DNA of 64,000 nucleotides, from assembly GCF_006345805.1 (NCBI RefSeq), contig NC_043019.1, forward strand, positions 22,133,360 through 22,197,359, in the 5' to 3' direction. The stretch's first letter is position 1, and each line of letters opens with the position of its first letter. A program made the position numbers and the translations under genes. Below the pieces are notes generated by a model, which was given only the letters and a program-made list of their open reading frames with translations, was not told where the DNA came from and did no database searches. Below, piece by piece: positions 11,501 through 32,554 of this stretch. This DNA is from Octopus sinensis (Eukaryota).

Positions 11501-11816
11501 GGTGGATCAAAGTATGTGGCTTTTATTGTCAGTCCATATATGGGCAAAGTTCATTCTGAAATGTGTTGTTTGACAGTTGAGAAATCCATGGAACCTGATT
11601 TAAAACGTAAGTTAATTATTCCTGTCCCACAACTTCACCCCCCTCTGTTATATGTATATATATACATATATAAATATGTTGATGCTGACTCCACCAAGTG
11701 AGCAATAAAGGACCTTTTGGACAATAACTGATGAAGAATTAGCAACATCTTGTCTTCTGTGTGAATTTTCCATTAGTTCCTTTTTTTTCATTTCTATTCA
11801 AAGTTTGAAAATTATG

Positions 11817-11852
<36 letters not shown>

Positions 11853-14800
11853 TGATAAAACTGGTAAGACAACAAAAGAATGAAAGAGACCTCGATATTG
11901 TGTAAATAGAGGAATTTATCTGTAAATGTAATATATGACAATTATTCGATAGCCATGATAAAACTCCAAGTTTCGGATGCTGAGGTGGAAATCCATGCTG
12001 CCATCTCTTCAGTTATCTGGCCATCGGAAAAAATGATATATATATATATATATATAAGACAAGGTATAATGGTCATTACATGCTTTCTTTATTGTAATAA
12101 AGAAAAATATGTAATGACCATTATTTATACTTTATATCTTGCATGTCACTGTATAAAAACCCATATAATGGGAGCACAACCATGGATTTACAATATGGAA
12201 TGCTGATGAACTATAACCTTGGACCCTGCCATAAGAATATGTGGAGTTCTTTAGTAATTTAAGCAATAGTTAGCCTGGTGTACTAACAGAGAGCTCATAA
12301 AGTATTTCATCCAGATTGATAATCCCTCACTAACATCATCATCATCATCATCATCATCATCATTCAATGACCATTGTCCATGCTGGCATAGGTTGGATGG
12401 TTCAACCAAGGCTGGTAAGCTGAGGGGCTGCACCAGACACCAGCCTGATTTGGCATGGTTTCTATGGCTGGATGCCCTTCCTAATGCCAACTGCTCCGAG
12501 AGTGTAATGGGTGCTTTTACGTGCCACTGGCACAGGTACCAGTATCCGCTATGATTACGATTTCACTTGGCTGGATGGGTCTTCTACTCAAGCATGAGGC
12601 CCAATGCTTGAAAGGTGCTTTTTATATGCCACCGACATGGGTGCTAGCTACATGACACCAGCATTGGCCACATTGCCTCCATGTGGCCTAATGTTCAAAA
12701 GGTGCTTTTTACGTGTTACTAGCACAAGTGCCAGTTATGTGACACCAGCCTCAGCCATAACTATGGTTTCACTTGGCTTGACGGGTTTTCTCATGCTCGG
12801 CATATCACCAAAGGTCTTGGTCACTAGTCATTGCCTCCATGAGGCCTAGTTCTTGAAGATCATGCTTCACCACCTCGTCCCATGTCTTCCTGGGTCTACT
12901 GCTTCCACAGGTTCCCCCCACAGTTAGAGATCAGCACTTCTTTACACTGCTGTCTTCATCCGTAGGCATCACATGACCATACCAGCACAGTTGTCTCTCT
13001 TGCACACCACATCTGATGCCTCTTATTCTCTTGACACTTGCACTCTATCATACATGCACAATGGCATTGCACATCCAGTGAAGCATACTAGTTCCATTTC
13101 TTACAAGCCTACACATGTCCTCGGTGGTCACAGCCCATGTTTCACTACCGTGTAGCATGGCTATTCACACACAGGCAACATACAGTCTATCTTTCAATCT
13201 GAGGGAGAGGTCTTTGTTACCAGCAGAGGTAGGAGCTCTCTGAACTGTATCCAGCCTATTTTCATTCTTGCAGCTATGCTCTCGGAGCATCTACCTCTGA
13301 GAGTGTGTATAATTATATTCAGTTGTGTTTAAAACTGACAAAGGATGTATTTTTTTACTTTTATACCAATCTATTAACAGATGTGCCTTTCAAACATACA
13401 TACCAAGAACTGAATAACGTTTTGGACATGGAGAAATGTCTGGACATCATAGAGCAGCTATTGTCTGACCAACATTCACAAATGGAGAATAAAATTGACC
13501 TCAATAAACTCTACGACCATTCTACAGAAGTCACCTGTCTTTCAAAGGTTAGTCTTTTCCTTTCATTATTTTCCAGCTTCATCATATTCTCACAATTCCT
13601 ATCAGTTCCTTTTCTCAATGGTTTCTTCTTTTTCAGCTTCTCCTTCTCCTCCTCCTTGCTATTGTCTTCCTTCTCTTAGACCAGTGGTTCTCAACCATTT
13701 TTTACCTATGGACCCTTTGATTTTTATTTTACGTGAGTGGACCCTCATAACCATCCCATGTTTAAAAATCCTATTATATTTTTATTAGGAATTGTATGAA
13801 AAATTCTTAAAATATTTTATGCATTGTAGACGTATAAGCAAATTATTGAGCATAAACTTGAACCACAAAATTTCATATGGACCCCACCCAGGGCCATATC
13901 AACCTCATTTAAGAAACACTGTCTTAGACTCTCTCTCTCCCCTCCCTCTTTTTCCTCTCACATCTCTCCATTCATAATTACTTTACTCTTCATTAGTCTA
14001 GTAGTTTACATCTCATCTAATTACAAAGTCCCATCCCTTACCAAATGAATTCCTTTACTTTGGTGGTAACTGTTTAACAATAAATGATTTTATTCTTTTA
14101 TTGTTCTTTAATTATTGTTGGTTAACCCAGATCAGCTGCAATCAATCAAATTTATGATCCAAGGTGTTCCTGTGAGGGCCTATAGGAAAGGTGTTTAGCC
14201 AGTATGTTGGCCTGGAGGAGGCCAAAGAGCCAAGGAAAGGACCCATGAATATCTGGTGGGCCTCTCTCCCTAAAAAATAGCTCCTCACAGCCTCCTTGAA
14301 TTTTGAGGGGAGCTTCTCTATCCTAGGTCTTGAATATAGTCCTGTTCCATCTTGCCAGATTTCTTTCAGAAATTCTAGTTCCTGTCATGACCATCTCTTC
14401 TTTTCAGTCTTATTTAGGACTGCAATATCTAACGTGGCCTCTTGTTTAAGATGAAGAATTGACCAATATTTCAAGTATGTTGAATAACTACATAGAGGAT
14501 CTCCATTATTGGCTCAATGTGCTTACAGTGTAAGGCACCTCTGTGCTGGAAGGTACCTATGTATTAAAAAGTACATGTGTGCTGGAAGGTACCTGTGTAC
14601 TGGAAGGTACCTTTGTGATGGAAAATCATTGTACTGGGAGACATCTCTGTGCTGTAAAAGGTACCTTTGTGTTATAGACAGCATCTGTGTACTGGATATT
14701 AGGGTCTTGACACAGTCCTCTGACTTGCTAGCTTCTGTCAAACTTGCCAACCCATATCAGCATGGAAAACAGATGATCTTAAATGGGGATGAGGAAGTTG

Positions 14801-15533
14801 ATGACACAACAACGACAACCATCATCATCATCATCATCATCATCATCATTTAACATCCGTTGTCCACACACATACACACACATATTAATGCAAACATATA
14901 TGTATAATTTCTTGCATACTGAAAATAATATAACATAGAGAAGGTTGTAAAACAGCTCTAATTCTATGGAAATCTTAAGGTTAAATAAATCTATATTTCA
15001 CTTCTCACACCTCCTGACTTTATGCTTATATATATATATATATCATAAAACCCACACATGGTTAAATCAATTGAATTCATAATTTAATTAAAATTTAACA
15101 GAAAATCATTGTTGGAATATACTGATCTCAAATTTTTAATTTTTAAATGAGCATCATAGTTACTACATTCACTGGATGAAGCAGAGTCATTGCTATGTCA
15201 TTGCAACATGGCAGGATCTATGTAAACTTACATTTTTCAGCCACTCACTTCCGATGATGGGGCTTTGTGCCTGACATATATGATGGTTACTTAACTTTCC
15301 TATTTTGCATTGTTAAAAGCTTTCCATGTTCATTGCTTCTTATTTGAAATTTTAACTTTTATTTTTATTTTAATTCTCTTCTGTAGATGGTTATGTCTAT
15401 TGGAAGCTACATCTCAAAAGACCATCCCCAGAGGCAGCAGTTTCTAGAAGCAGTTGAGAAATGCTTTGAGAAGTCACCACAACTTCAGGAAGACTCTCTT
15501 CAATTTAATGCTGATTTAAGCAAGGAAAAATGA
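439..15533 (+). CDS. MYSM1: Histone H2A deubiquitinase MYSM1, 5'-partial; exons 439-604, 2652-2782, 3314-3420, 5307-5384, 7472-7573, 8124-8310, 10169-10296, 11486-11606, 13381-13547, 15387-15533
   Basis: Spliced translation gives SWIRM ([70 protein letters not shown]) then MPN/JAMM ([31 protein letters not shown]), matching recalled vertebrate MYSM1. All introns are GT-AG with compatible phases; stop TGA 15531-15533. Confidence 0.95.
2231..2373. mobile_element. Mariner-like MITE (~140 bp)
   Basis: Perfect 21-bp TIR aggttgtcccaaaagttcgta (2234-2254 / 2350-2370), TA-flanked. Confidence 0.8.
2652..2782 (+). CDS. MYSM1: MYSM1 exon (SWIRM C-part)
   Basis: [43 protein letters not shown]; gacag / gtaag. 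Confidence 0.95.
3314..3420 (+). CDS. MYSM1: MYSM1 exon
   Basis: (E)QAFYNQLPK...KLDAM; ttcccag / gtgaat. Confidence 0.85.
4708..5120 (-). mobile_element. tRNA-derived SINE, family 2 (CORE-like body, ~410 bp)
   Basis: Near-identical to at least 8 other copies in the window; head aggcgcaggagtggctgtgtgg, caccttgggcaagtgtc body, (AAGAGT)n tail. Confidence 0.85.
5307..5384 (+). CDS. MYSM1: MYSM1 exon
   Basis: [17 protein letters not shown]..., resembles MYSM1 RTRRRRVRDPWGNWCD; tttcag / gtaaat. Confidence 0.88.
5840..6067 (-). mobile_element. tRNA-derived SINE, family 1, with 17-bp TSD
   Basis: TSD gtaatcagtattaaata at 5823-5839 and 6068-6084; A/B-box head. Confidence 0.9.
6370..6760 (-). mobile_element. 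SINE family 2 copy
   Basis: High identity to 4708-5120. Confidence 0.85.
7472..7573 (+). CDS. MYSM1: MYSM1 exon
   Basis: NKECNK...[16 protein letters not shown]; ttttgtag / gtgagt. Confidence 0.9.
8124..8310 (+). CDS. MYSM1: MYSM1 exon (MPN start)
   Basis: [32 protein letters not shown]...[10 protein letters not shown]; tttcag / gtaagt. Confidence 0.95.
8351..8570. mobile_element. piggyBac-like MITE, family A
   Basis: CCCTTTAG...CTAAAGGG termini followed by TTAA; related copies near 4005 and 49030. Confidence 0.65.
10169..10296 (+). CDS. MYSM1: MYSM1 exon (JAMM motif)
   Basis: [17 protein letters not shown] = H-x-H-x7-S-x2-D intact; ttttag / gtgaga. Confidence 0.95.
11252..11451. mobile_element. 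piggyBac-like MITE, family B
   Basis: TTAA-CCCTTTTGTTACC...AAAAAGG-TTAA; related copy 49250-49470. Confidence 0.6.
11486..11606 (+). CDS. MYSM1: MYSM1 exon
   Basis: [18 protein letters not shown]...; tttcag / gtaagt. Confidence 0.92.
11952..12022 (-). ncRNA. Candidate type I hammerhead ribozyme in a Penelope-like terminal fragment
   Basis: Minus strand GCCA-GAUAA CUGAAGA GAUG..CAUC C GAAA CU-UGG-AGU U UUAUC-A-UGGC: full core, stems I-III, GUU site. Confidence 0.55.
12336..13290 (-). mobile_element. RTE-type LINE 3' fragment with (ATG)n tail
   Basis: Degenerate LHGSETWA...WYGHVM...RPRKTW-type coding remnant followed by the 3' UTR also seen as many short copies (e.g. about 1370-1486, 4095-4345, 7120-7362, 37855-38057, 60360-60650, 62763-63108). 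Confidence 0.8.
13381..13547 (+). CDS. MYSM1: MYSM1 exon
   Basis: (H)VPFKHTYQE...EVTCLSK; ttaacag / gttagt; phase fits both neighbours. Confidence 0.85.
13682..13921. mobile_element. hAT (Charlie-like) MITE
   Basis: CAGTGGTTCTCAACC...AGAAACACTG termini, 8-bp TSD TCTTAGAC (13674-13681 / 13922-13929). Confidence 0.85.
14535..14700. repeat. 18-bp minisatellite (GTACCTGTGTGCTGGAAG), intronic array
   Basis: About 9 degenerate units. Confidence 0.85.
15387..15533 (+). CDS. MYSM1: MYSM1 terminal coding exon
   Basis: ttctgtag acceptor, MVMSIGSY...[10 protein letters not shown]...SKEK*, phase 0. Confidence 0.8.
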   Translation: MVMSIGSYISKDHPQRQQFLEAVEKCFEKSPQLQEDSLQFNADLSKEK

Positions 15534-15692
15534 CAGAATAGAATCTAGTTGTGACAGAATAGAATCTAGCCACTAACAATGGCATTCAAACTTATTGCAT
15601 GTTTTGGAGAAAGAAATTCCATTTAGTTGTTTATTAATGGTTCAATTCAAACAAAGTGCACTAATTATTGATTGATAAAATCAATACCAATT

Positions 15693-16170
15693 TGTAAAAG
15701 GTACCTTTGTGTTATTGACAGCATCTGTGTACTGGATAGTACTTGTGTGCTGAAAGATATTTTGTGCCGGAAGATACTTGTGTCCTGGCCGGTACCTGTG
15801 TGCAGGAAGGTACCTTTGTGTTGAAAGGGATCTGTGTGTTGGAAGGTACCTGTGTGCTGGAAGATATTTTGTACTGGACGATACCTGTGTGCTGGAAGGT
15901 ACTTGTGTGTTAGATAGTACCTGTATGCTGGGAAGTACCTTTGTATTGGATGGTATCTGTGTGCTGGAAGGTACCTTTGTGTTGGAAGGTACCTGTGTGC
16001 TGGAAGGTACTTGTGTGCTGGGCAGTACCTGTGTGCTGGAAGGTCCCTGTGTTCGAAGGGATCTATGTGTTGGATGGTGACTGTGTACTGGAAGGTACCT
16101 GGATGCTGGAAATACCTTTGAGATGAAAGGTACCTTAGTGGTGGAAGATACCATTGTGCTGGGAGGTAGC
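15693..16170. repeat. 18-bp minisatellite, array downstream of the MYSM1 stop
   Basis: About 26 units of GTACCTGTGTGCTGGAAG; gives hexapeptide-repeat ORFs on both strands. Confidence 0.9.
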
Positions 16171-16964
16171 TATGACTTTCACTGGGCCCCTCTGTTCAAG
16201 TCAGGTCATGGTATACAGCTTAGGTTTTAATTTTCATCAATTAAGAGACTATATGATATCCTGGGCGTTATTGTTAGGCTAGTAGCCATTTTGCTATGCT
16301 GTAAGGACTACTACATTAGTTCAACTGTATTCAAGGACATTGGTGGTTGGGGGTTTATCCAAAAGATAAAAAAAGTAGAGTGATTAAAATTAAAGTCAAT
16401 CCCTGTGAGATTTCCAGCCAGAAACTTGAGTTTTGAGATCTGTGAAGATTTCCAGTCAGAAACTGGAGTTTCAAGATCTGTGAAGCAGTTTAGACTCAGT
16501 GATAAAGAGTTTATAGAATACTTAGAAAAATGATTTAAGTCTCTCATTTCAAGGCAGCAAATCTATCTGTCTATTTATCAATCTGTCTGTCTATTTATCT
16601 GTTTATCTTTCTGTCCATTTGTCTGTCTGTCTGTTTGTCTATCTAACTTTCTGGATTATCATATAGCATATTGTTATGGCCACAATGACCAAAAAGGAAT
16701 CTATAAAAAATCTCCAGTCCCACTGCGTGGCACTCTGGGTAGGTGTCTTCCACTATAGCCCCGAGCCGACCGGAGCTTTGTGATTGAATTCGGTAGGTGG
16801 AAGTTACTGCCGTGTGTGTATATGTGCGTGTAGGTGCTTGTGCCTCTCCGAAAGAGAGAGAGGGAAAACCAGTTCCTTTATACATTGTATACAGTGGCAA
16901 GCATACTATCTCAACTGAGAAGAAGAAAGGATAAACAACATTACAATTGATGAGGAAATGCAGC

Positions 16965-17515
16965 ATCTAGTCAGAAATACTCACTGTCAAATCTGGAACT
17001 GGTTAGATTCAAGGATGATCTTTGGAGTATAGATAAGGACATCAAATTCTGCAAATTCCCTCTGAGGAGGAACCAACACCTTGGGAAACTACACACACTA
17101 GTGAAGGAACTCAAGAACAAAAAATTATTCAAGTTCTTCAAAGGCAGGGGGCTATCTGTCTCTATAGAGGACAAACATACCATAGTCAACTTCTTCAATG
17201 TTGCACTAGATCTGAGCAATTGAATGTTAACTAATAACCCATTTTCTATAGCGATGTTTGAACAAAATTTTAATAATTTTATATTTTGTTGAATTTACCT
17301 GTATCTACCTGCAATTAGAGTCACTTTGTGACGCTTATTCAAACCATACCACAAGCCTAATGACAACCTTAAATACACAAACTTCAGTGGTAATCACCTC
17401 AAGTGAATAACTCAATCCATGGTCAAAAATATTTCCAACCACTTATCTAGACTGTCGGCTAATGAAGAGATATTTAAATTAAACGAGAAATACTATAACA
17501 ACATGATAGAGGAAA
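16965..17515 (+). mobile_element. Penelope-like element RT remnant
   Basis: Broken frames reading KKLFKFFKGRGLSVSIED...VNFFNVALDL...PYHKPNDNLKY...NISNHLSRLSANEEIF...YYNN, typical of the PLE RT C-terminal/thumb region. Confidence 0.75.
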
Positions 17516-18306
17516 AAGATAGAGATACAAAGATAAATCCTCATCACAACAAACCTAGTATATGTTCTTTTTTTTCTTTCTCCTATCGCACATAATAAAT
17601 ACCACAGCTACGGAAATTTTGCAATTACTAATAACTTGACATGGAAATGCACCACCCTAAAATATATTTTATAAGAACTAATTATTTGCAACTAAGCATA
17701 TTAAGAACCATCTACATTATAAGAAATAAACCTGCTAATATGATAAAATACAATTTGACCTAATTAGATAGTATTCCAACTTCAACCAGAAAACTGGTGT
17801 GGAGCCGAGGTGAACACTAGAATCTACAACCATATCAGATTTCAGATTCAAAATAGCCTCTCCCCGCCCACTTCCCTCTGAATCCTAACCACTAAAAAAT
17901 AAGCGAATTCAGTCCTCTTTGAGCCAATCTGGTTGAAAGACACTGAACAAAGCTGCGCAAATAATTATGCCTGGTTGCATATACAACCAGCAGAAACACG
18001 TAGGTCATCATAACAATAAAAATATGCAGTATTACAAACTGTTAAGTAAAAGAAACATTTTGAGGATGTACCAGTCTTCATGGAAAGTGGACATTAAACG
18101 ATGATGATGATTATATATATATATATATTCGCCATGATAGATTGGTAGCCACTACACACATTTTTTTCTCTCCTTGTTTCTTTCTGTGGAAGAGCATAGG
18201 CTCAAAACATAAAAGACTTTTTTCAATTCCTGAGCATTATACTAATACATCTGTTTGTTTTCTACACCACCTGTCTTCGTCTTTTGTTTTTTTCATGAAT
18301 TCTCCC

Positions 18307-18372
<66 letters not shown>

Positions 18373-19193
18373 ATGTCTGTCTGTCTATTTATATGTTAAT
18401 CTGTCTATCTATCTGGCTACTTGTCTGTCTATCACTTTCTTTTTAATCTCTCATACACACACATACAGAAGAAAAATAAATATTTGAATATTGCCCAACC
18501 CTTACTAGCATGGAAAAACACATGAAACAAAAGTGTGAGTGCATGCTTGTATGAATATTTATACCATAATGGGCTGTGAAATCCTGGGGAAAAATATCAT
18601 TCATGTATGATGTGCACTGATGTTTCCTTTAGTATTATGATGCAGTTAAAAAATAAGTTTTTAGTCAGATTTATTATAATTGCTCTCTAAATGACATTGA
18701 AGGAATTAATGCATTCTAAGCAAAACAAAAAGCAAATTTGAAAGTGACCTTTTGAATTTTACCGGTGTAGGCTGTAAAAGTGTACCTTCTGTAAAGTAAA
18801 CACAGTGAAAAAAAAAAACAACATTTCTCTTCGTTTTTCAATTATTTTTTGTTTAATCAGAATTTTAATAAATTGAAATATGACCTTTTAAATTTTCAGA
18901 AAATGTAAAAACATTTGAAACCACTCCATCAAGTGATCACATTTGATGGCATAAAAAAAAAAAATGGGCACATTAAGGCAAAGAAACAAAGTAGTTATTA
19001 ATAAGAAGGGGTTAAAATTAATGCCTGCAAGATTTCAAAGTTCTAGCATCACTCCTTCATAGTCAGCCAATGAACTTTTTCAGCCCACCCACATATGTGT
19101 GTATTTATATACACATATAAATATATACATACATGTATGCATATATATATACACACACATATGTACATATATAATACATACATATATATATAT

Positions 19194-19493
19194 ACTAGCA
19201 GTATCGCCCGGCGTTGCTCGGATTTGTAAGGGAAATAACTATATAAGCATTTTTAGAGAGTTACTTCCCTTATATAAACCGAGCTAAAAATGCGTAAAAA
19301 TGATGGTAAATTTTTTTTTAAATCGTAGACTCATTGTAGACGTGCGCTAATACCCAGATGGGCTTGATATGAATCACGACTATAAGATACCCGCTTTTGG
19401 TTAAACTGCACCGCAAAATGTGGAAGTAGTTAGGAATCTAAATCGGAGTAGACAGACACTCACACACACAATTTCAGTTTTATATATAAAGAT
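19194..19493 (+). mobile_element. Non-autonomous Helitron/HINE-like element
   Basis: 5' ACTAGC plus subterminal palindrome CCCGGCGTTGCTCGG, 3' TATATATAAAGAT; second copy 63395-63790. Confidence 0.6.
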
Positions 19494-19919
19494 TTGTGTG
19501 TGTGTATGTGTGTCCCCTTATCTTGACATCATGGATTATAAGCAATAATTATTAACAAGCATCACCATCATACATGCCAAGTGATGTTGTTCCCTGAAAA
19601 TGTATCATGTCATGCTTTGAAACAGGTGAGTGTTGGCCACAAGAATAACATCCAGCCATAGAAAAACCTGCTTCAATGAATTCCACCTGATCTATGCAAG
19701 CATAGAACGTTAAAGACGATGATGATGATGTTAATGGTAACAGGAAGATCTTCCTACCATAAATCTGTCTCAACAAATTTCATTTGACCCATACAAGCAT
19801 GGAAAAATAGATGTGCAAGCACTGATAACAATACTGATGATGGTGGTGGTGGTGTATTGGTAATGATGGTGATGCTGGTGGGTGTTTAAATTACTAATAT
19901 GACTGATGGGATTTAATCA

Positions 19920-20230
19920 TTACGTTGTTTCCTGTAATCCCATTCTTTCAATCCTTTTCCACCAGTCACTCTGTGGGGGCACGTTGTTGACCAGACTCAA
20001 ATATTCATCATGTGTTTTATTAAAATGCCATTCTTCCAAGCAGGCATATGGTAAGTTTCTATAGAATTTGTTGGCAAACAGATGTTTTTCTAAAGTAATT
20101 CGTTTGAGGTCTTGAAGTCCAAAAGCACATACACTGCGTCTAAAAGATCCGTAACATATACTTTCGTTTTTATTTTTTGTATCCTGCCAAACAACATATT
20201 TTGCCAGTTTGTAAATCTGAGAATATGAAC
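19920..20230 (-). CDS. GCNT-like distal terminal exon (3b)
   Basis: tttattccag acceptor; SYSQIYKLAKYVVW...CYGSFRRSVCAFG...HLFANKF...ACLEEW...ETT*; ATTAAA at 19912-19917. Confidence 0.88.
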
Positions 20231-23200
20231 CTGGAATAAATTGAAAGATATAATCATATCAGAAGAAATAAGATACATCAATGCATGGAATAACACTACT
20301 CTCTTTTACTCTTTTACTTGTTTCAGTCATTTGACTGCAGCCATGCTGGAGCACCACCTTTAATCGAGCAACTCGACCCCGGGACTTATTCTTTTGTAAG
20401 CCCAGTACTTATTCTATCGGTCTCTTTTGCCGAACCGCTAAGTTACGGGGACATAAACACACCAGCATCGGTTGTCAAGCAATGCTACGGAGACAAACAC
20501 AGACGCACAAACACACACACACATATATATATACATATATACGACGGGCTTCTTTCAGTTTCCGCATACCAAATCCACTCACAAGGCTTTGGTCGGCCCG
20601 AGACTATAGTAGAAGACACTTGCCCAAGGTGCCACGCAGTGGGACTGAACCTGGAACCATGTGGTTGGTAAACAAGCTACTTACCACACAGCCACTCCTG
20701 CGCCTGTGTAACATGATTTTTGTCCTTGGGTAGCCACTGTTATTTCCTATTTGCTTACCCCTAGAAAGTATGAAAAATGGCTGATATTTCCTTCAAATTT
20801 TGTTTTTGTTACATTTATTCAAACCTCAAAGAATCTTTCTCAATACATGGCTAAGATGCTCCTCCATTACTCCTGCTCGTGATCAGAGGTGCACATATTG
20901 TCAGCCACATGCTCAAGTGATTAAGGTCAAGTAAATGACAAGAAAATCTGTAGTATTGAGCAGAATATTTGCTATAACAATATTTCTGCTTCAGCAACTC
21001 AGCACTGAATGCATCCGAAATGTAATGGAAAATAAGTCGGTTTCAAAACATTAATGTCCAGGTCACAAAAGCAAAATTTGAAGGGAATGGCAGTCATTTC
21101 CTTTGATTTCTAGATAGAAGTAAATAGAAAATAACACTTACTTACCAAAGACAAGAAAACTTAATATTTTGTTACACAGTGTAATAGATGGCAAGCTGGC
21201 GGAATGGTTAGCATATTTAATGAAATGCTTGGTGGCACTTTTTCTGGCTCTCTATCTTCTGAATTCAAATCCCACCAAGATCAAATTTGCCTTTCATAAT
21301 TTCGGGGTCAATAAAATGAAGTACCAGTCCAATACTGGGGCTGATATATATTTCTTTACTACCCACAAGGGGCTAAACACAGAGGAGACAAATGGATTAA
21401 GTCAATTACATCGACCCCAGTGCGTAACTGGTACTTAATTTATCAACCCCAGAAGGATGAAAGGCAAAGCTGACCTCGGCGGAATTTGAACTCGGAATGT
21501 AACGGCAGACGAAATACGGCAACACATTTCGCCCGGCATGCTAATGTTTCTGCCAGCTTGCCACTGGGGCTGATATAATTGATTTGTCACCTCCCTTTAG
21601 AATTACATGCCTTGAACCTTGTAACTGATCAGCATCCCATTTAGGGGAAATATCATGATACCAGTCACTTAATGTGCCATGAAACCTAGGTTGTTACCTT
21701 ATGGGTCCCATAAGGATGGGCTGAAAAGTTCATAGGCTGACTATGAAGGAGTGATACTAGAACTGTGAAATCTTGCATTCATTAATTTTAACCCCTTTCT
21801 TATTAATAACTGCATTGTTTCTTTCCAGGTAAACTGACATCTCACTGTTCAAAGAAGGCTTCAAAAGTAACTAGTTGTGATTTCTCTTGAAAATGGGGAA
21901 AATTTGGCACCACGGTGTTATCAAGTATCTGCAGAAAAAGGGTTTAGTCCCCAAGGACATTGATGCTGACGTGGTTGCTACATTAGAAGACACCCCAGCT
22001 TTATCAACAGTGCAAAAGTGAGCAGCTGAATTTAGGAGAGCAAAAGGGGGTCTTAAAGATGACCCAAGGTCTAGATGTCCTGCAATTACTACCACCAAGG
22101 AAAATATTGATCATATTCACCACACAGTGATGAATGATAGGCAATTAACTATAAATCAAAGAGCCAATGTTTGTATATCTTGTGTGAGAGTTGAGAATAT
22201 TCTGCACAATGAACTTGGCATGAAAGTTTCTGCTTGGTGGATGCCACGTCTCCTGACACCCGATCAAAAGTGCACCAGGCTGATCATATTAGGGGAAAAT
22301 CTGACATTGCTTGAGGTAGATCCAGCTGGTTTCCTTGAATGTTTCCTCAGCCAATGGCTTCATCACTTTGAGCCAGACACAAAGGCAATCCCTCCTTACC
22401 TGCTCCAATGAAAGCCAAGACCATTTTATCTGCAGGCAAGGTGATGGCCCCAGTTTTTGGGATGCAAAAGGCATTGTATTTATTGAATTATTTCTAAAGG
22501 GCCACACTATCAATGAAGAGTACTATGCCAACTTTCTGAGGCAGTTATGAAAGGCTATCAAGACTAAATACCCAGGAAAACTGACTAAAGGGGTCTTGTT
22601 TCACCAGGACAATTCTTCAGCACACAAGTCCTTGGTTTCAACGGCTGCTGTGCATGTCTGTGGCTTTGAACTAGTTGATCATCCTCCCTGTTCTAATTTG
22701 GCCCCATCTGACTATCATCTGTTCCCCAATATAAAAAAAAATGATTGGCTGGGAACCATTGTTGCAGTGATGATGATGTCATGTCTGCAATTGATGACTT
22801 TTCTGACCAGCAGGAAGAAAGCTTCTTCACCAATGGGATCGAAGCCCTGCAACACCGATGAAAGAAGTGTATGGACTGCAAGGAAGACTATGTTGAAAAT
22901 AGGCCTAATTTGGTCATGTTCCATGAGAGTATCTTTGTCAGCCTATGAACTTTTCAGTTGACCCTTGCAGGGATGAAAAAAGATTTTTAAAATACATGAT
23001 AATTGATAGAAAATGAGAAATTGTATACAATAATTATTCTTTGGCTTTGGAAAGTCACATTGAGGCAAGGATCTTTTTTACTAGTTTCAGTCATAAGACT
23101 GTGGCAATGGTAGGGCATTGCCTTGAAGAATTTTAGTCATATAAATTAACCCCAGTACTTTTTTAAAAGCCTAGAATTTATTCTATTGGTCTCCTTAGCC

Positions 23201-23281
23201 AAACCATTAAGTTACAGGAGCTTAAGCACACCAATACTACTTGTCAAGCAGTGGTGGCGAACAAACACAGGACAGACACAG

Positions 23282-23329
<48 letters not shown>

Positions 23330-24316
23330 TTCCATCCGCCAAATTCACTCACAAGGCTTTGGTTGGTCTGAGGTTATAGTAGAAGAGATTTGTCCAAGAT
23401 TCCAAACAGTACGACTGAACCTGGAACCACACAGCCATGCCTAACTTGCATGGCTGTATTGTTAACAATTTCACATCTGATCCATGCAATTAGGGATTTG
23501 GTCCTATTGTCTGAATGTTGCCAGCTAGTGATCCATACCAAGTAGCTCCTAACCTTCTTTTAGCTCATGCCCTACCCTGCATTGAATCTTGAATATTTCT
23601 GTGCTCCCTTCTCTCCATGGCACCGTTAACGTAAATAGTACTTCAATTTTGTGTCATATGGTTAATAGTAGAAACTGGTCTCTTTTAAAAAGAATTTTAA
23701 ATCTTTAACAAAATTTGTAAAATTTATTAAATAATAACAAAATTTTAGACAGCTGAGTGGTTGAGAAACATTGCATTGTTTCCTGTAACCCCATTTTTTC
23801 ACCACCCCCATCCATTACCCTGGGTACGCATGTCATTGGCTAGATTCAAATATTCATCACATGTTTTATTAAAATGCCATTCTTCCATGCAAGCATATGC
23901 TAAGTTTCTCTCGAATTTATTCACGAAAAGATGCTCTTTTAATATAACATGTTTAAAATCTTCAAGCCCCAAAATGCATACACTGTGTTTATAAGATCCG
24001 GAACATGGCTTTTCACCCTTCCAGGCAACATATTTTGCTAATTTGTAAAGGTGAGAATGTGTACCTGGAAGAAATTAAAGAGATACACAGATCAGGAGAA
24101 ATAAGATAAATCAATACATGAAACAGTTCTATATTTAAGAGATGAGGAATTATGTACATTATTTACATTAGTTACATTCAACGGATATTTGTCCGCATCT
24201 TGTTTGTTGTTAACACAATGTTTCGGCTGATATACCCTCCAGCCTTCTTCAGGTATCTTGGGGAAATTTCGAACCTGGGTTCTCATTCCGAAGGCATTTT
24301 TCGCTGTTGTTATTGT

Positions 24317-24354
<38 letters not shown>

Positions 24355-27300
24355 GGTGTTTGTGTGTGTGTTTGTTTGTTTGTGCATGTATGTATGTATG
24401 TATGTATGTAAACTGCTCTTCAAAACTATAAAGCCAAAACACTGTTTTTTCTGGTGAACTATACTCCCCAAATTCATGAAACTCACCTCAAGATAGGAAA
24501 TGGAATAGAAGAAGGCATTTGAAATCCCAAAATAAATTGGATAATAAAACACAGAACCAGAAACCCCTTGTTCAAAACTGTATTGCCAGGTTGAATAATG
24601 TTGCAAAAATGATGCAAAACAAGGAAATTATGATATATTTCAATGATATTCTCATGCAATACATCAATAATTGTGCGTTTGACCACCACCTTTCTGAATT
24701 ACTTCAAAGACACATGATTTCATGCTCTCAATCAATTTCTGCTGCAGAACAAGTGGAAGCTCTTCCCAGGCCTTCTTTACGGCTGTTTTAAGTTCATCAA
24801 CAGATGACTACTGCTTGCCTTCCCTGTACCCAACATTTGTGAGATATTCTCAGGGATTCTCTGTAGGATTAAGGTTGGAACTTCTTGTTGACTTCAAACC
24901 CTGTTGCATGGAGGAAATCCAAAGTTGCCTTTGCTTTATGAATAGGGACACTGTCCTGTTGAAATATAAAGATTTTGTCATGGAGCTTTCTTCCTTCTGA
25001 CTCAATGTGAGCCCTGTCCAACATACCTATTTCTTTACTACCCACAAGGGGCTACACACAGAGGGGACAAACAAGGACAGACAAACGGATTAAGTTGATT
25101 ATATCGACCCCTGTACGCACCTGGTACTTATTTAATCGACCCCCGAAAGGATGAAAGGCAAAGTCGACCTCGGCAGAATTTGAACTCAGAACGTAGCGGC
25201 AGACGAAATGCCGCTTAGCATTTCGCCTGGCGTGCTAACATTTCTGCCAGCTCGCTGCCTTGTCCAACATACCGATGTATGATGCAGCATTGAAACGGCC
25301 ATCCATGATGGCAAGTGGCAGCTTCCCATTGGTAGATATTGCTCCCCAATAAGACCTCTTTTGCTGTTCAGTCACTTGGAATAAACAGAAATTTGTAGAC
25401 ATTTATCTGCCCAGTAATACTTATAACCGTTGGGGCCATCCAACTTCCATTTCTTCTCATCAGGGAACACAACTCTGGTCTATTCACTATCCCATGTCTG
25501 ATGCTGCCAAGCAAATACCAGTCTAACAGTTTTGTGTGAAGGGGACAATAGCAGACGTCCTAGCTGCTTCTTCCGGTGGAAACCATTGTTCAAAATCACT
25601 CTTCTTATGGTGGATGTCAAGGTTCCTACTTCTGCCGATGCCTTTATTTTGGAAACAGAAGAGCAGCATGACTTCTTCACAGCTCTAACAATGGTCCTTT
25701 CATCCCTTTCTTGTAGCTGTCAAGATCTTTCACAAAATTGTCTACTGGTATACTGCTTCACTGAATCTTCTTGGCAATCTTCTAGTTACCCATTCCTTCC
25801 ACTTTCAGTGCAAGAATCTTCTCTAGCTCAATTTTGGAAAGCTTTGTAGCTTTAGGCATACTGGAAATGTAATCTAAACCATGGAGATTTCGGTTGAGCT
25901 GAATATTTTCTGCAACAATTTGTAAAGAAATGAAAATATATTAGTGGCTTTATAGTTTTGAAGTGTTGATAACCTAGGGAAAATTAGAAAATCAGATGTT
26001 GTAATGTGATAATAAAGATACAAGGTTTTCATTTCAATGTATTCATGAAATGCTCATTTACAATATATTATGCCCCTTAGTCCACTTAAATACAGAGCTA
26101 AATTTCTAAATAACTTTAAAAAACAGATGGCTTTATAGTTTTGAAAAGTAGTTCATACATATATATATAGGGAAAGTTTACGAAAAAAACAAAAGACGGA
26201 GACAGGTGGTGTACAAAAACAGATGTATTAGTATAACGTTCAGGAATAGAAAAAGTCTTTTACGTTTCGAGCCTACGCTCTTCTACAGAAAGGGACACAG
26301 AAAAAGCAAGGAAAGAAACAGTATATATATAATCCATTATCATTGAGTCTGACAAAATTTACACACTGTTTTGCCAACTAATAATTACAGATTAAATATT
26401 TTTCCACTCCGAGACTCATCAGACATAGCTTCTTCTTGAACTTGTCAAACTCTGGGATAATAAACACATACACACATTCATATATGATGGGATCCCACAC
26501 AGTTTCTGCTTACTAAATTTAGTCATAAGACATTGGTTGGTCCGGAAGTATAGTAGAAGAAACTTGCTCAAGGTGTTGCACCATGTGACTGAATCAGAAA
26601 CCATGTGGTTGTAAAGCAAGCTTTTTAACCAAACAGCCATACATGTGCCTAGCTATAAAGGAATAGATTGGCCATTTATTGCAGCAGCTATCCACTAAAT
26701 ATATTTATGCTAAAATATGAATAAAATCATTCTTTGAAGTAGTTAGAGAAAATTTGGCCAAAGAATTAAAGAATAAAGTTTTCATTTAAAATTCCTAATT
26801 CAGACACCTTTTACCTTTTACTTATTTCAGTAATTAGACCGTTGCCATGCTGGGGCACTGTCTTGAAGAATTTTTAGTTAAATGAATGGATCTCAGTGTT
26901 TTATTTTTTTTTCAAGCCTGGTTCTTATTCTATTGGTCTCTTTTGCTGAACCACTAAATAGATAAACTTACCTGCATTTCAACAAGTTTTCTGTAGAGGG
27001 CAAAAATTGGAGAGTAGACAAAGAAATTTAGATGTCACTTTAGGGATTTCAAAGTAAAACTAAGAGAAAACAACATCATAATCCTTAAGGATTAAGATGC
27101 ATAAACACAACCAAATTCTTCCAGAGAGAAAGAAGGAGAAAAAAAAAGGAAGAACCTAATACCCAACTAGTACTGGATTATTTACCAATTCCTAAAGAAT
27201 GAAAGGCAAAGCTGACTGCTGTAGAATTTGAATTTGTAATGCAGAGATCTGGAACAAATGCTGCAAAGCATTCTGTCCACTACTCCAACATTTCCTCTCA

Positions 27301-28679
27301 TTCGCTCACTCACTTTTAGTAGTTGGGACCTAAGTTGAATTACTACTGTATGTAGTTTTTATTGAAATCCTATCATTGACATAAAGTTATGCATTTAAAG
27401 GAAGGGTACATTGGTCAAATTCAGCACACTATTTGATTGCTAGTTGATTTTATCAAACTCACAGGGATAAAAGGCAAAGTTGACTTCAGTGAGAGTTGAA
27501 CTCAGAACAGTCCATATACAGATAACACTTAGCTGTATATGGGCTTAGTTGTATATGGACTTAGCTGTAAATGGTCTTAGCTGTATATGGACTATTTCAC
27601 CATAACAAATACAGTTTAAAAATTTAACTTACTATTATAAGGATGTGGTGATCCAATATGTGTATTATAAAAAATGGTGGGGTATACAGATTCATCTGGA
27701 ATAGTTGTGTTTCTTAGCCAATTTATTAAATCCTGAGCAATTCGGTTATTGACTGTATAGTTTATAAAGTCTCGAGTTACTGCAACATAGTGTGACCCTT
27801 TAGCTAACGTGATATTGTGTGGTACTGGTTTCTGTTTTAATGCTTTCCTCCATCTGTGTATCCAACGTCTGCAGAAAAGAGAGAAGAGAATGCATTTTAA
27901 CAGTCAATCTATTGTATAAATGGTAACATACTCACCTGTCAGGAAGGAAACATGTGTGTTCCAAGAACCCTCAATGACTGGTTTTTTTTTATATTAATGT
28001 TGGTCTCTTGAAGGTTATTCACAGGGTCCCAAAAGATCCAAGGCAGATGAAACCCTTCAGCTCTTTAGTTGTTCATCTGAGAGAAATTAACTCCATGCAG
28101 GTCCTACAACCTGATGACCTCCTGGGCTCATGATACTTGCTGTACCGGAACAAATAATTTTGAAGCATGAAAGAGTAGGACTGGCTCTGCACAAACCATG
28201 CCCATTATAGCAATAAACCCCTGCAGCCTTGTGAGCATTTTACATCAGCTAAAGGATTAAACCTCCACAGAAAATCCAAATTGGGTGATCCTAAGGCAGA
28301 TGTGTACAATTGTACTTCACCGGTATCAGGCTTTCCCTGTTACTCTATGTATGCTACAAACATATTAATTTGTTTTTCCTTTGTATTATATTTACGAATG
28401 AAGAGGTGGTAAGTATACTTAGGGCTAGACACTTGCTTCTGGGAACAGGCCAGGTATGGTAGATGGGGTTAAGTTACAGTCTCTGCAACACCACTGACCA
28501 ATGAAGCAAAAAAGGCCAACCTTTCAAGATATACTATTGACAACCCAATAATTTATTTATATTGCAATATTACATTAAATACTATGAATATAATTTAACA
28601 TAATATTATATAACATAAATAATTATAAAAACCAAGTTGGCCTTTTATGGTCTTAGAAATTATTGTAGGTCTCTGCTAC

Positions 28680-28729
<50 letters not shown>

Positions 28730-30758
28730 GTGTGTGTGGATGACAAAATTAATGTCTGATAGAAAGCTTACAATGTTGCAGCAGTAAAGCATATGTAAAT
28801 TTGAAAAACAAAAACCTTTTTAGTTCAATGTGTGTAGACAGGTTTTTTCAAGTGCATTCAGTGCATGTCACCTCCAAAGATATGGCTGCTATTTCTAGCA
28901 CGCCGTGCTACCACGTAACAGTTGTTTGTGATAAAGGACCAAAAATACTTGTTATGAGGTATCAGGGCATCACCAGAGTCCATCATCCAGCAGTACCCAC
29001 AGCGGTGGATTGGTTGAGAGGACAGCCTTCCTTTTCTAGTTGCCAGCTAGGGATTTTACTACTACTACTACTGCTGCTGCTACATCATCTACATCATCAT
29101 CATCATCATCCTCATCATCATCCTCATCCTCATCATCCTCATCCTCATCATCATCATCATCATCATCATCACATTCATCATCATCTATATTTAGGGAGAG
29201 TATGTCCAAATGCCCTAACTATGACTAACCCATCTACCTATTTCCAAGTGAAGTAATAAGTCTACTGAATGACAAACAGCCTGGACAATGTTTATATGGA
29301 AAACTGGAAATAAATGACACTGTGTGAATGAACACTTTATTTACAAAGATTGCATAACATGTCAAAAATCTGAATGCGTTCTTGCAATGGACTGCAAACA
29401 AACGACGCCATTAGTGAAATCATTCTTCAAATTAATTATATATTGTATGTATTGTATGTATTAAAATGTCACAAACGTGAAGAAAAAGAAATAAGGAATT
29501 ATCAAATTATTGAATGTGAAATTTAGATGTTTTCAAATAATAAATTTTAAACAGTAGGATAGCAAATAAATAAGAAATTATCAAATTATTAAATGTGAAA
29601 TTTAGATATTTTCAAAAATTAAATTTTAAACAGTAGGAAAGCAAATAAATAAGAAATTATCAAATTATTAAATGTGAAATTTAGATATTTTCACAAATTA
29701 TTAAATGTGAAATTTAGATATTTTCAAAAATTAAATTTTAAACAGTAGGAAAGCAAATAAATAAGAAATTATCAAATTATTAAATGTGAAATTTAGATAT
29801 TTTCAAAAATTAAATTTTAAACAGTAGGAAAGCAAATAAATAAGAAATTATCAAATTATTAAATGTGAAATTTAGATATTTTCACAAATTATTAAATGTG
29901 AAATTTAGATATTTTCACAAATTATTAAATGTGAAATTTAGATATTTTCAAAAATTAAATTTTAAACAGTAGGAAAGCAAATAAATTTGATTGAAAGTAA
30001 ATTAAGAAAAAGCAATTTGATTCATACCTGAAGTCAAGTTCGACAATATTTTTTCCATTAAGTCCTCGAAGAAACCTGACTATCTGAAGATTAGTTTTTA
30101 AAGGGAAATCCATTCCACAAAGATTAATGTAATAACGCCATGATGAAAAGCGCAACAAATCTCTCATCACTACCAGATCTGCTTCAACAAGGCTAAAATC
30201 ACCCCACTTTATAGCAAATCTTTTACTGCTTAGAAACACATTTGGGAAGCATTCGGCAATTGATTTGGCGACATGGTAGTCAGAAATGGCAGCTTTTTGG
30301 TCCAGATGGATGACATATATGTTCTGTGGGCGGTATATTGCTCTTAGAAGTTGCTCCATTTGTGTGACTTGATGATGAAAGAATATTCCATAGGCAATTG
30401 GGAAAGATTCCTCTTCTATTGTCATACTGTTCGTGAAGTATCCTCTTTCAGTTATCAACCTTGAACAGTTTTTTGACAGCTTCAACAAGTCTTGTGCAGG
30501 ATGTGGATATTTCTTTGCTTGCTCCTTTAATTCAGGTGATGTTTGGAAATCATTATCAAAAATCTTGGCACAGTTAAAAGAATCAACTTTGCGATTTGAA
30601 AGTGTCATCAAAGCTTTCCTTACAAATTCTGATTTTAACATTGATATTGACTTTCTTTTCCTGCTAGTAAACATTATTATTATCATCATAAGGATGAATA
30701 AAATTACAAGTGTTGAATAAGATTTTCTTATTGAAGACACTTTTCTCCAAAAGTTCAT
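19920..30758 (-). CDS. GT14 core-2/I-branching beta-1,6-N-acetylglucosaminyltransferase (GCNT-like); exons 30028-30758, 27633-27868, then 23799-24064 (410 aa) or 19920-20230 (425 aa)
   Basis: Type II TM N-terminus; FPIAYGI..QMEQLLRAIYRPQNIYVIHLD, YYINLCGMDFPLKTN, PHNITLAKGS, IPDE, C-x8-C, HLFANKF motifs; GT-AG introns, phases 2 and 1. Confidence 0.93.
20297..20706 (-). mobile_element. SINE family 2 copy
   Basis: Full-length copy just upstream of the exon 3b acceptor. Confidence 0.85.
20720..21155. mobile_element. Unclassified MITE-like dispersed repeat
   Basis: Homologous to about 60977-61415; imperfect ~27-bp TIR tgtc(c/t)ttgg...tgttattt. Confidence 0.6.
21349..21562 (-). mobile_element. 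SINE family 1 with 15-bp TSD, nested in an older opposite-orientation copy
   Basis: TSD actggggctgatata at 21334-21348 and 21563-21577. Confidence 0.88.
21712..22967 (+). mobile_element. Full-length degenerate mariner transposon
   Basis: TIR ctgaaaagttcataggctgac (21721-21741 / 22937-22957); broken transposase with WMPRLLT, FWDAKG, FHQDN, LAPSDYHLF. Confidence 0.9.
23799..24064 (-). CDS. GCNT-like proximal terminal exon (3a)
   Basis: tttcttccag acceptor; THSHLYKLAKYVAW...CSGSYKHSVCILG...HLFVNKF...ACMEEW...GWGW*; AATAAA at 23723-23728. Confidence 0.88.
24212..24257 (-). ncRNA. Minimal hammerhead-like motif in a Penelope-like terminal fragment
   Basis: GAUAC CUGAAGA A GGCUG..CAGCC GAAAC AU U GUGUU; stem III ACAU (probably decayed ACGU). 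Confidence 0.4.
24409..26156 (-). mobile_element. Degenerate Tc1/Tc3-like transposon with IR/DR-type ends
   Basis: 26-bp TIR (24411-24436 / 26128-26153), inner repeats at 24571 and 25945; transposase remnant RVVFPDEKKWKLDGPNG. Confidence 0.8.
25028..25260 (-). mobile_element. SINE family 1 inserted in the Tc3-like element
   Basis: 13-bp TSD tgtccaacatacc at 25015-25027 and 25261-25273. Confidence 0.9.
27528..27593. repeat. 16-bp tandem repeat x4 (CTTAGCTGTATATGGN)
   Basis: Directly visible; preceded by an inverted copy at 27509-27525. Confidence 0.9.
27633..27868 (-). CDS. GCNT-like exon 2
   Basis: ttttctgcag / gtaagt; RWIHRWRKALKQKPVPHNITLAKGSHYVAVTRDFI...WLRNTTIPDESVYPT. Confidence 0.92.
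29487..29985. repeat. 79-bp AT-rich minisatellite with nested 33-bp sub-unit
   Basis: Five units of aaataaataagaaattatc-aaattattaaatgtgaaatttagatattttc-aaaaattaaattttaaacagtaggaaagc, with 0,0,1,0,2 extra 33-mers. Confidence 0.92.
30028..30758 (-). CDS. GCNT-like first coding exon
   Basis: ORF 29955-30758 truncated at donor cag/gtatga (30027). Confidence 0.95.
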
Positions 30759-32554
30759 TTTTTTTATAGTTTGTTCACTGATATTTTTTTAAGGAATTAT
30801 TCCAATTTTCATCTATACTTCATGTATTGTATTTTCTCTTCTCTATTTTTTGAAGAAGAATCTGGTGAATCAGACAAAAATGTACAGCAGAATACTCTTT
30901 GTATTCACTGGGCTTCACACTGTTAGACTTTTCATTATGGGAATACTTAAAAGAGAGAATTTACAGTACAAATCCAACAACAGCCAATGAACTGAGGACA
31001 GCCATGGAGCAATTAAATTTAAATGTGTCATAACTATGAGAAATTAACATTTCTTATCCTTACAGCAAAAATCATGTATACTACCAAAAGCAAACTAAGC
31101 AAAAATAAAATATCCCACTGTTTTTTTTTTTTGTGCAGATTAGGAAAGAGAATTATATTTGCAAAGTGTTCCAGCTTTTAAAAATATGTTAAAGATTATC
31201 ATTTCCTTTTCTTTTTCTTCACTTTTTTATTTATTCTTTTCTTTTACATTTATTTTATTTTATTGTAATCTGACGTAAGGAATTGATAAGAAATAGATAA
31301 ATAATGTTTTTATGGAAGTTAGCAGAAGTTCCCATCCTTTCTACATGCTTTTAATCATCTGTGATTGGTGATTTGTACTGGAAAAGGAATCAATAATATT
31401 TATTGGTACGATTTACAGCCATCTGCCAATCATAGAGAATCATTTCACAACTGACTGTTCTATTTGTTTTGTTCAATTTGTCATGTTTATACTGGGATTA
31501 TACCTACACATAAAGTATATCATGTAGGTAGATAAGATAAAACTCCAACTATTTCCTCTTAAAGTTCCTCTGCTTATTCTAGGATTACAATGTATAGGTA
31601 GTTTGTTGCTGTATTGATGTGAGTTATATATCAGAGTTGAAAATTCTGGAAATATAGTTTGCAGAGTTTTTATATAACAAAACAGGAAGTTGCAAAATTT
31701 TTTGGTATTATTTATACACCATTACACATGTTTCATTTTCTAACAGGAATTAGTGTTTTACATGTTAGATGGACATGTAAGGAATTTCCTATAGGAAATT
31801 ATTCAGTCAGAGAATTAAAACAATACAAATTTTACATCTGGAGGAAACGTTATTAATCAGGAGTAATATAGATAGTTGGGGTGAAAGAAGAAATCAAATA
31901 TTACAGAACCTACATGTGTATGATTCTGTGTGTATGTGTGTGTGTGTGCGTGTGTGTTTGCACGTGTGCATGTGTGTGTGTGTGTGTGTGTGTGTGTAAT
32001 TTATTTATGGGACATTACATGTCTTTAAGTGCTATAGATAGTTTTATATGTCGAGAAATATCTCAAACATATCCATCAGGCACAAACCATGTATCATAAC
32101 GAACTAAAAAATTGAATAAGAGAAGAAAGGCAAAAAACAAAACAAAAAAAACTGAGAATGCAGCATATAGAAAACATGAAAAGAATGGAAAAAGAAAAAC
32201 AGAAAACAAAAACTAAAATATAAAAAGTAAAAAGAAAAAAATGTAAAAGAGTTATCCTCCTTACACTTTAAATTATAAGGCTGGAAAGATATCAACAAGT
32301 TAATTAGGAATAGGCAGAATTTTCCAGTTCTTCAAGATATATTTATTCATATACTTGCAACTGCTGAAAATTTCTGACCTGGAGTTCAGTAGAGTTAGGG
32401 ATCTTAGATCTGAACAGGATCTGTGCTCTTTCAGCTAAGCAAAGCCTACATTTATTCAATCCATTAACATATGGTATGGATTTCTCAATTATTTTCTACT
32501 TAATTACATGTGGCATTTTGTTATCTTTCAATATTATCTCAACTTTTTTGTTCC

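Follow-up and report, generated by a model that had tools for sequence, protein, structure and literature searches.

We analysed a window of 64,000 nucleotides from Octopus sinensis (contig NC_043019.1, positions 22,133,360 to 22,197,359 of the forward strand), which carries on its minus strand a gene of three exons with its ATG at 30758. The encoded protein is, as predicted from its sequence, a type II Golgi glycosyltransferase of CAZy family GT14 (Pfam Branch), similar to the core-2/I-branching β-1,6-N-acetylglucosaminyltransferases (GlcNAc-transferases). The coding part of exon 1 specifies the cytoplasmic tail, a signal-anchor helix, a stem whose Cys63 corresponds to mouse C59, and the first half of the Branch domain, with the PF02485 match beginning at residue 121. 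Exon 2 carries an IPDE motif that aligns to the SPDE of mouse C2GnT-L (structure 2GAK), in which Glu320 is the proposed catalytic base (PMC4202792). The last coding exon occurs in two versions, a proximal one (3a) and a distal one (3b), and exon 2 joins either of them in frame (Table 1).

The 410- and 425-residue products have residues 1–322 in common, about three quarters of the protein, and differ in their last 88 or 103 residues. A first-pass annotation of this DNA had given the phase of exon 2, both in-frame joins and every coordinate and length exactly; it had called the common part the N-terminal half, which understates it. The ttccag acceptor and the open frame that it had noted for each exon are borne out by the sequence, the junctions reading ...tttcttccag/GT at 3a and ...tttattccag/GT at 3b, each preceded by a pyrimidine-rich tract. 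Both isoforms match PF02485 over profile positions 1–249 of 250, with 145.3 bits (E = 3e-42) for the isoform ending in 3a and 132.7 bits (E = 2e-38) for the isoform ending in 3b, against a cut-off of 23.4. The proposal that the gene has two alternative-last-exon products also has its counterpart in public annotation: the 3a product is 100% identical to RefSeq isoform X2 (XP_029649955) and the 3b product is identical to isoform X1 (XP_029649954), accessions that we take to belong to the Octopus sinensis RefSeq annotation. Both products were already public in RefSeq, and the design of the locus is not a new discovery; it is these RefSeq models that point to actual use of both exons.

The two introns upstream of the alternative exons contain tandem repeats close to their donor sites. 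An AT-rich minisatellite at 29485–29986, with nested periods of 33, 56, 79, 112 and 191 nt and up to 97% matches, begins about 40 nt past the exon 1 donor. In intron 2, 4.2 copies of a 16-nt repeat, ACTTAGCTGTATATGG on the plus strand, occupy 27527–27593, about 40 nt past the exon 2 donor, and thus adjoin the donor that must select between the 3a and 3b acceptors.

Table 1. Features of the glycosyltransferase gene and its duplicated last exon, by position in the window
Feature	Position	Strand	Details
Exon 1, coding part	30028..30758	-	731 nt; donor CAG/GTATGA; tblastn 100%; common to all isoforms
Exon 2	27633..27868	-	236 nt; donor ATA/GTAAGT; ends in phase 1 (one base over); common to all isoforms
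Frame-preserving cassette exon in intron 2, Tc1-like transposon-derived	25790..25909	-	120 nt; open in the window
Duplicated block, copy a	23766..24123	-	~60-70 nt of intron, exon 3a and ~30 nt beyond the 3a stop
Exon 3a, proximal alternative last coding exon	23799..24064	-	88 residues including the junction codon, then TGA; 410-aa isoform
Internal donor in 3a, AGT/GTATGC	23976..23982	-	last exon base 23982; used by RefSeq X3
Second internal donor in 3a, CAGG/GTAATG	23813..23819	-	last exon base 23819; in-frame 3a to 3b join
AATAAA, candidate poly(A) signal of the proximal isoform	23723..23728	-	starts 71 nt after the 3a stop
Degenerate mariner-type transposon between 3a and 3b	21720..22961	+ (antisense to the gene)	PF01359, E = 7e-9
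Duplicated block, copy b	19915..20290	-	blastn counterpart of 23766-24123
Exon 3b, distal alternative last coding exon	19920..20230	-	103 residues including the junction codon, then TAA; 425-aa isoform
ATTAAA, candidate poly(A) signal of the distal isoform	19912..19917	-	starts 3 nt after the 3b stop

The two isoforms align to mouse C2GnT-L (2GAK; chain numbering offset 37) with E = 1.7e-63 and 4.4e-62. In this alignment exon 3 covers the mouse Cys372–Cys381 loop, position 378, Lys401 of the (A/V)NKF motif and Cys413, the partner of the stem cysteine (C59–C413 in mouse). In this metal-independent GT-A family, the diphosphate of uridine diphosphate (UDP) is probably bound by Arg378 and Lys401 instead of Mn2+ (PMC4202792). 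The swapped part, which the first-pass annotation had taken to be donor-binding, indeed holds both of these diphosphate-binding positions. The C-x8-C pair, the 20-residue spacing from its second cysteine to the lysine of (A/V)NKF and the C-x-EEW cysteine, all recorded at first pass in both copies, align to C372/C381, K401 and C413 of the mouse enzyme, and Lys401 and Cys413 are kept in both modules. At the equivalents of mouse V377–R378, 3b has Arg-Arg and 3a has Lys-His, in O. sinensis and O. bimaculoides alike; among 23 non-octopus homologues the position-378 column is 74% Arg and 9% His. Arg versus His at this position would plausibly give the isoforms different catalytic behaviour.

Family features are otherwise retained with either module. 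Residues C63, C98, C170, C343, C352 and C381 showed no variation among 27 and 44 sequences and are present with either module, and D302/E303 of the IPDE motif are at least 90% conserved across homologues. All of the family-invariant residues of the swapped region (W, two Cys, NK, Cys) are kept in both modules in three species, and the modules score alike (61.8–67.5 bits) against a profile built from non-octopus homologues only. Consistent with this, AlphaFold2 modelled the two isoforms with a predicted local distance difference test score (pLDDT) of 88.1 and 88.4, with blocks at about 90 over most of the exon 3 region, and the top Foldseek matches of both were 2GAK, 2GAM and 3OTK (E ~1e-32, target-normalised template modelling (TM) score 0.79–0.82). 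Both isoforms are thus confidently predicted to be foldable as a GT-A domain. Domain, predicted fold, catalytic motif and cysteines place them in GT14/Branch, with Arg378 present in the 3b isoform only; the enzyme name given by RefSeq is based on homology only, and β-1,6-GlcNAc transfer from UDP-GlcNAc to a Gal-β-1,3-GalNAc or poly-N-acetyllactosamine acceptor is the putative activity.

Exons 3a and 3b are paralogues, and their homology reaches, as had been claimed, into the upstream intron and the 3′ tail. The two blocks are 74.2% identical over 376 bp (blastn, E = 2e-65), and the encoded protein segments are 55% identical (tblastn, E = 8e-28). By segment, identity is 81% in the intron from about −70 and 86% over the ~30 nt past the 3a stop, and what lies beyond is random. 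The 3a stop is made by a 2-bp indel relative to 3b, with homology running on past it; the sole other coding indel between the copies, of 15 bp, is in frame, and 3b has a five-residue loop insertion relative to 3a. The last 10–20 codons of 3b read …WWKRIERMGLQETT in O. sinensis and O. vulgaris and …WWGWWKRIKEWDYRKQCND in O. bimaculoides (19920–19960 of the window compared with ~30960–31028 of the O. bimaculoides sequence), and the end of exon 3a, GNGWGW, resembles the O. bimaculoides 3b tail. O. sinensis and O. bimaculoides have different repeat insertions just upstream of −70 at both acceptors, which leaves only the last ~70 nt of the intron alignable. Recent gene conversion between 3a and 3b was ruled out, as the cross-species synonymous divergence (dS) of the paralogues, 0.71, equals the within-species value of 0.68.

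The duplication appears confined to this block. No copy of exon 1 or 2 was found elsewhere in the window by tblastn (E ≤ 10) or in 15000–24000 by blastn with word size 7, in agreement with the first-pass annotation, which had seen none between 3a and 3b and had described the interval as filled by repeats and a mariner. The 3.6 kb between the exons indeed consists of interspersed repeats of high copy number (up to 31–39 copies elsewhere in the window) and a degenerate mariner-type transposon. SINE-like (short interspersed nuclear element-like) repeats lie at 20298–21154, 21187–21562 and 23072–23429 and recur 12 to 39 more times within the window; ARAGORN found no tRNA-derived SINE heads.

The two-exon layout, for which other cephalopod genomes had been suggested as a check, is found in two further species: the order exon 1, exon 2, 3a, 3b recurs, with all frames open, in the chromosome assemblies of O. 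vulgaris and O. bimaculoides. The O. bimaculoides RefSeq annotation has the same pair of products, XP_052831942 (410 residues, 3a type) and XP_052831941 (429 residues, 3b type). A homology search with the full isoform gave no closer cephalopod match outside Octopus, and the comparison of layouts is confined to this genus because the next homologue is an oyster protein at 39% identity. A literature search returned no papers on octopus GCNT isoforms; in a study of the O. maya oviducal gland, a GCNT1-like transcript appears merely in a list.

Each alternative exon is followed by a candidate poly(A) signal. The AATAAA and ATTAAA reported at first pass at 23723 and 19912 are present, these coordinates being their low ends, and would serve the proximal and the distal isoform, respectively; the ATTAAA is also found in O. 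bimaculoides and O. vulgaris. The poly(A) sites themselves would be expected ~10–30 nt below 23723 and below 19912, or farther downstream in the case of 3b. For lack of evidence, we rejected a choice between acceptors by competing RNA structures: when the first 300 nt of intron 2 were compared with the 70 nt before each acceptor using RNAduplex, no docking/selector complementarity was found, the z-scores of −0.9 and +1.2 against dinucleotide shuffles being no better than shuffled sequence.

Two donor sites inside 3a, both conserved in O. vulgaris and O. bimaculoides, are used by annotated side products. RefSeq isoform X3 (XP_029649956, 396 residues), which we rebuilt exactly from the window sequence, splices the 23982 donor to the 3b acceptor; this join shifts the reading frame, and the resulting stop codon ends at 20090. 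Because gene finders do not propose frame-breaking models without aligned transcripts, by the logic of the NCBI pipeline, X3 argues for transcript support and for pre-mRNAs that run through 3a to 3b and use the 3b acceptor. The second donor has its equivalent in the 508-residue O. vulgaris model CAI9739411, which joins 3a to 3b in frame and yields a protein with two C-terminal modules. This fusion may merge two isoforms rather than represent a real transcript, because the consensus that EVidenceModeler built for O. vulgaris drew in part on alignments of proteins from earlier octopus proteomes (PMC10700109).

The same O. vulgaris model includes the cassette exon in intron 2. Its frame is free of stops in O. 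sinensis and O. vulgaris; in O. bimaculoides, model XP_014789353 ends four codons into it (KNIQ, then stop). The cassette comes from the N-terminal, helix–turn–helix part of a Tc1-like transposon in sense orientation, a case of transposon exonisation inside the catalytic domain, and the neighbouring open reading frame scores 29.8 bits against PF01498, narrowly missing the cut-off of 31.5 bits.

Downstream of exon 3b, the plus strand at ~9660–15540 is collinear with the 3′ portion of a gene that, in O. vulgaris, encodes a MYSM1-like deubiquitinase (Myb, SWIRM and JAB domains). The glycosyltransferase gene and this one are convergent, with about 4.3 kb separating the end of the MYSM1-like gene from exon 3b. 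Between them, on the minus strand (15681–16154), is a long open reading frame of degenerate repeats; when compared with O. vulgaris it matched itself several times at 75–77% identity, and it looks more like a minisatellite than a gene.

We then compared the rates at which the two exons have evolved. Divergence between 3a and 3b (nonsynonymous divergence, dN, ~0.23; dS 0.42–0.77) gives a dN/dS ratio (ω) of 0.31–0.60, depending on the method (NG86 bootstrap 0.15–0.65; Fisher p ~1e-4), a long-term dN/dS below 1. This is about the same as the interspecies value for the shared exons 1 and 2 (0.45 between O. sinensis and O. bimaculoides, at a dS of only ~0.1) and lower than the ~0.7 expected had one copy drifted freely since the duplication. 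Under simulated neutral substitution, an 80-codon frame stays open over the post-duplication distance in ~5–7% of cases, counting substitutions alone. The O. sinensis/O. bimaculoides split is placed at 34 million years (PMC10700109), and a crude clock that sets the paralogue dS of 0.42–0.77 against an orthologue dS of 0.08–0.10 for that time dates the duplication to ~140–330 million years, an age at which both exons would be expected throughout Octopodidae and possibly more widely. Our reading is that selection probably kept both modules for most of their history, with present-day constraint on either unproven.

Taken together, these results make it likely that 3a and 3b are ordinary alternative last exons born by tandem exon duplication. 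An old duplication of ~0.4 kb would have copied the last coding exon with its acceptor. By one route, exon 2 would be spliced to the proximal 3a and the RNA cleaved and polyadenylated shortly past it; by the other, 3a would be skipped and exon 2 joined to the distal 3b, 3.8 kb further on. Read-through to 3b would compete with splicing to 3a and use of the 3a poly(A) site. The common residues 1–322 would supply the membrane anchor, the stem, the nucleotide-binding half and the IPDE catalytic-base motif, and the swapped module would close the GT-A domain with the disulfide loop, the two basic residues that hold the UDP diphosphate and the cysteine that ties the C terminus to the stem.

Several observations weigh against alternative use of two functional exons. 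An ATTAAA starting 3 nt past the 3b stop is in an unusual place for a sole poly(A) signal. The full-isoform homology search returned only genome-annotation proteins for Octopus and no fragment from the Logan, ENA or JGI transcriptomes, the 90% clusters of homologues holding NCBI and EukProt entries only, and it is evidence-driven annotation pipelines that suggest expression of each isoform. Between O. sinensis and O. bimaculoides, ω is 0.73 for 3a (13 nonsynonymous to 4 synonymous changes) and 1.15 for the 3b core (14 to 3), both with wide intervals; the pooled value of 0.91 (27 to 7) is not different from 1 (p = 0.48), and its difference from the 0.45 of exons 1 and 2 is borderline (p = 0.06). 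Purifying selection, which the first-pass annotation had proposed, therefore holds over the long branch between the paralogues and is not demonstrable since the split of these two species. Nucleotide identity between the species, 93.6% for 3a and 92.2% for 3b, is no higher than in alignable introns (92–95%). O. sinensis 3a has Val for the outgroup-invariant Ala of FANKF, Phe for a conserved Leu and His at R378, and, owing to small indels, O. sinensis and O. bimaculoides read the extreme 3b tail in different frames, so that this C-terminal end seems unconstrained.

The recent ω near 1 for both copies, their failure to exceed introns in conservation, the three substitutions in 3a and the frame shift in the 3b tail would all be expected if one exon alone gave a working enzyme and the other were a duplicate in slow decay, included in transcripts through splicing noise or giving an inactive product; a neutral 80-codon frame would, moreover, outlast the 34 million years since the species split (d = 0.05) about half the time. 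Over the longer term this account fares worse. The bootstrap upper bound for the paralogue ω, 0.65, lies below the value expected under free drift, a neutral frame would seldom have survived the whole time since duplication, the family-invariant residues persist in both copies of all three species, the modules score equally against the family profile, and the indels between the copies are limited to the one in-frame 15-bp event and one at the very end. We consider decay of one exon unlikely, but the most serious of the alternatives to a pair of ordinary alternative last exons.

A different possibility is that 3a is an internal exon and that the main product carries both modules in tandem through the donor at 23819, which is near consensus, is in frame with 3b in all three species and has its equivalent used in CAI9739411. 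None of the 60-odd homologues has a second C-terminal module, however, nor does the 2GAK fold. RefSeq models 3a and 3b as alternatives in two species, and the O. vulgaris annotation possibly merges two isoforms; we regard a tandem main product as very improbable. Still less credible is that 3b is the remnant of a tandem whole-gene duplicate, an exon of another gene or an artefact of assembly, possibilities close to one that the first-pass annotation had named as a refutation, for which we can cite only the general frequency of tandem glycosyltransferase arrays. Mis-assembly is excluded because three independent assemblies have the layout in common and the copies, at just 74% identity (26% divergence), are not collapsed or duplicated reads. 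A separate gene is excluded because traces of exons 1 and 2 are absent between and after the copies and because the next gene downstream is the convergent MYSM1-like one, within a locus collinear in O. vulgaris; homology between the copies is also limited to the 376 bp.

Among known systems, the octopus isoforms are most like mouse C2GnT-L/GCNT1 (2GAK, 2GAM, 3OTK) as proteins, both with 34–36% identity, phmmer E values of ~1e-62 to 1e-63 and TM ~0.8. They have the cysteines, (S/I)PDE and K401 in common with it, and R378 in the 3b isoform only, 3a having His. To our knowledge, the coding region of mammalian GCNT1 is not split like that of the octopus gene and has no alternative C-terminal module. 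In gene design, the pair recalls pipe, a Golgi carbohydrate-modifying enzyme in which alternative 3′ exons code for part of the catalytic domain. Drosophila pipe and PGRP-LC have mutually exclusive terminal exons (PMC9013439), and 3′ substitutions of tandem-duplicated exons are described for human LAMP2 (A/B/C), TPM1 and TPM3 (PMC8373072). In these genes each transcript uses one of several tandem homologous last exons, each with its own stop and 3′ end; the octopus exons are likewise tandem homologous last exons with their own stop and a candidate poly(A) signal, of which one would be used per transcript. The known cases are backed by experimental isoform and function data, whereas the octopus pair is known from sequence and annotation. 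Unlike PGRP-LC, which uses competing RNA structures, the octopus gene showed no docking/selector complementarity by RNAduplex.

Within GT14 itself, human and mouse GCNT2 join one of three tandemly duplicated alternative first coding exons (1A/1B/1C) to common exons 2–3 (PMC5147899, PMC8373072). Both genes would thus make isoforms by picking one of several tandem homologous coding exons while sharing the rest of the catalytic domain. The variable exon of GCNT2 is 5′, is chosen by an alternative promoter and encodes most of the protein. In the octopus gene the variable exon is the 3′ last one, and the choice would be made through splicing and polyadenylation; it specifies the final quarter of the protein, in which the diphosphate-binding residues lie.

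The locus is an uncharacterised instance of a well-described architecture, in which tandem exon duplication gives rise to substitutable exons. Its wider significance is limited by this being a textbook route to isoforms, by the presence of the products in RefSeq and by the fast evolution of the gene under weak constraint. A more specific and rather doubtful idea is that the pair forms a regulated switch at the donor-diphosphate site (Arg in 3b compared with Lys-His in 3a), with isoforms that would differ in activity, pH dependence or donor preference, or with a 3a isoform that would be attenuated or regulatory; octopods would then have retained the pair for well over 100 million years. If both isoforms are active, the gene would offer a natural test of the diphosphate-binding module at the C terminus of GT14 enzymes, setting Arg against His at the Arg378 position on an identical N-terminal body, and the family would have reached exon-swapping twice, with 5′ exons in vertebrate GCNT2 and with a 3′ exon in octopus.

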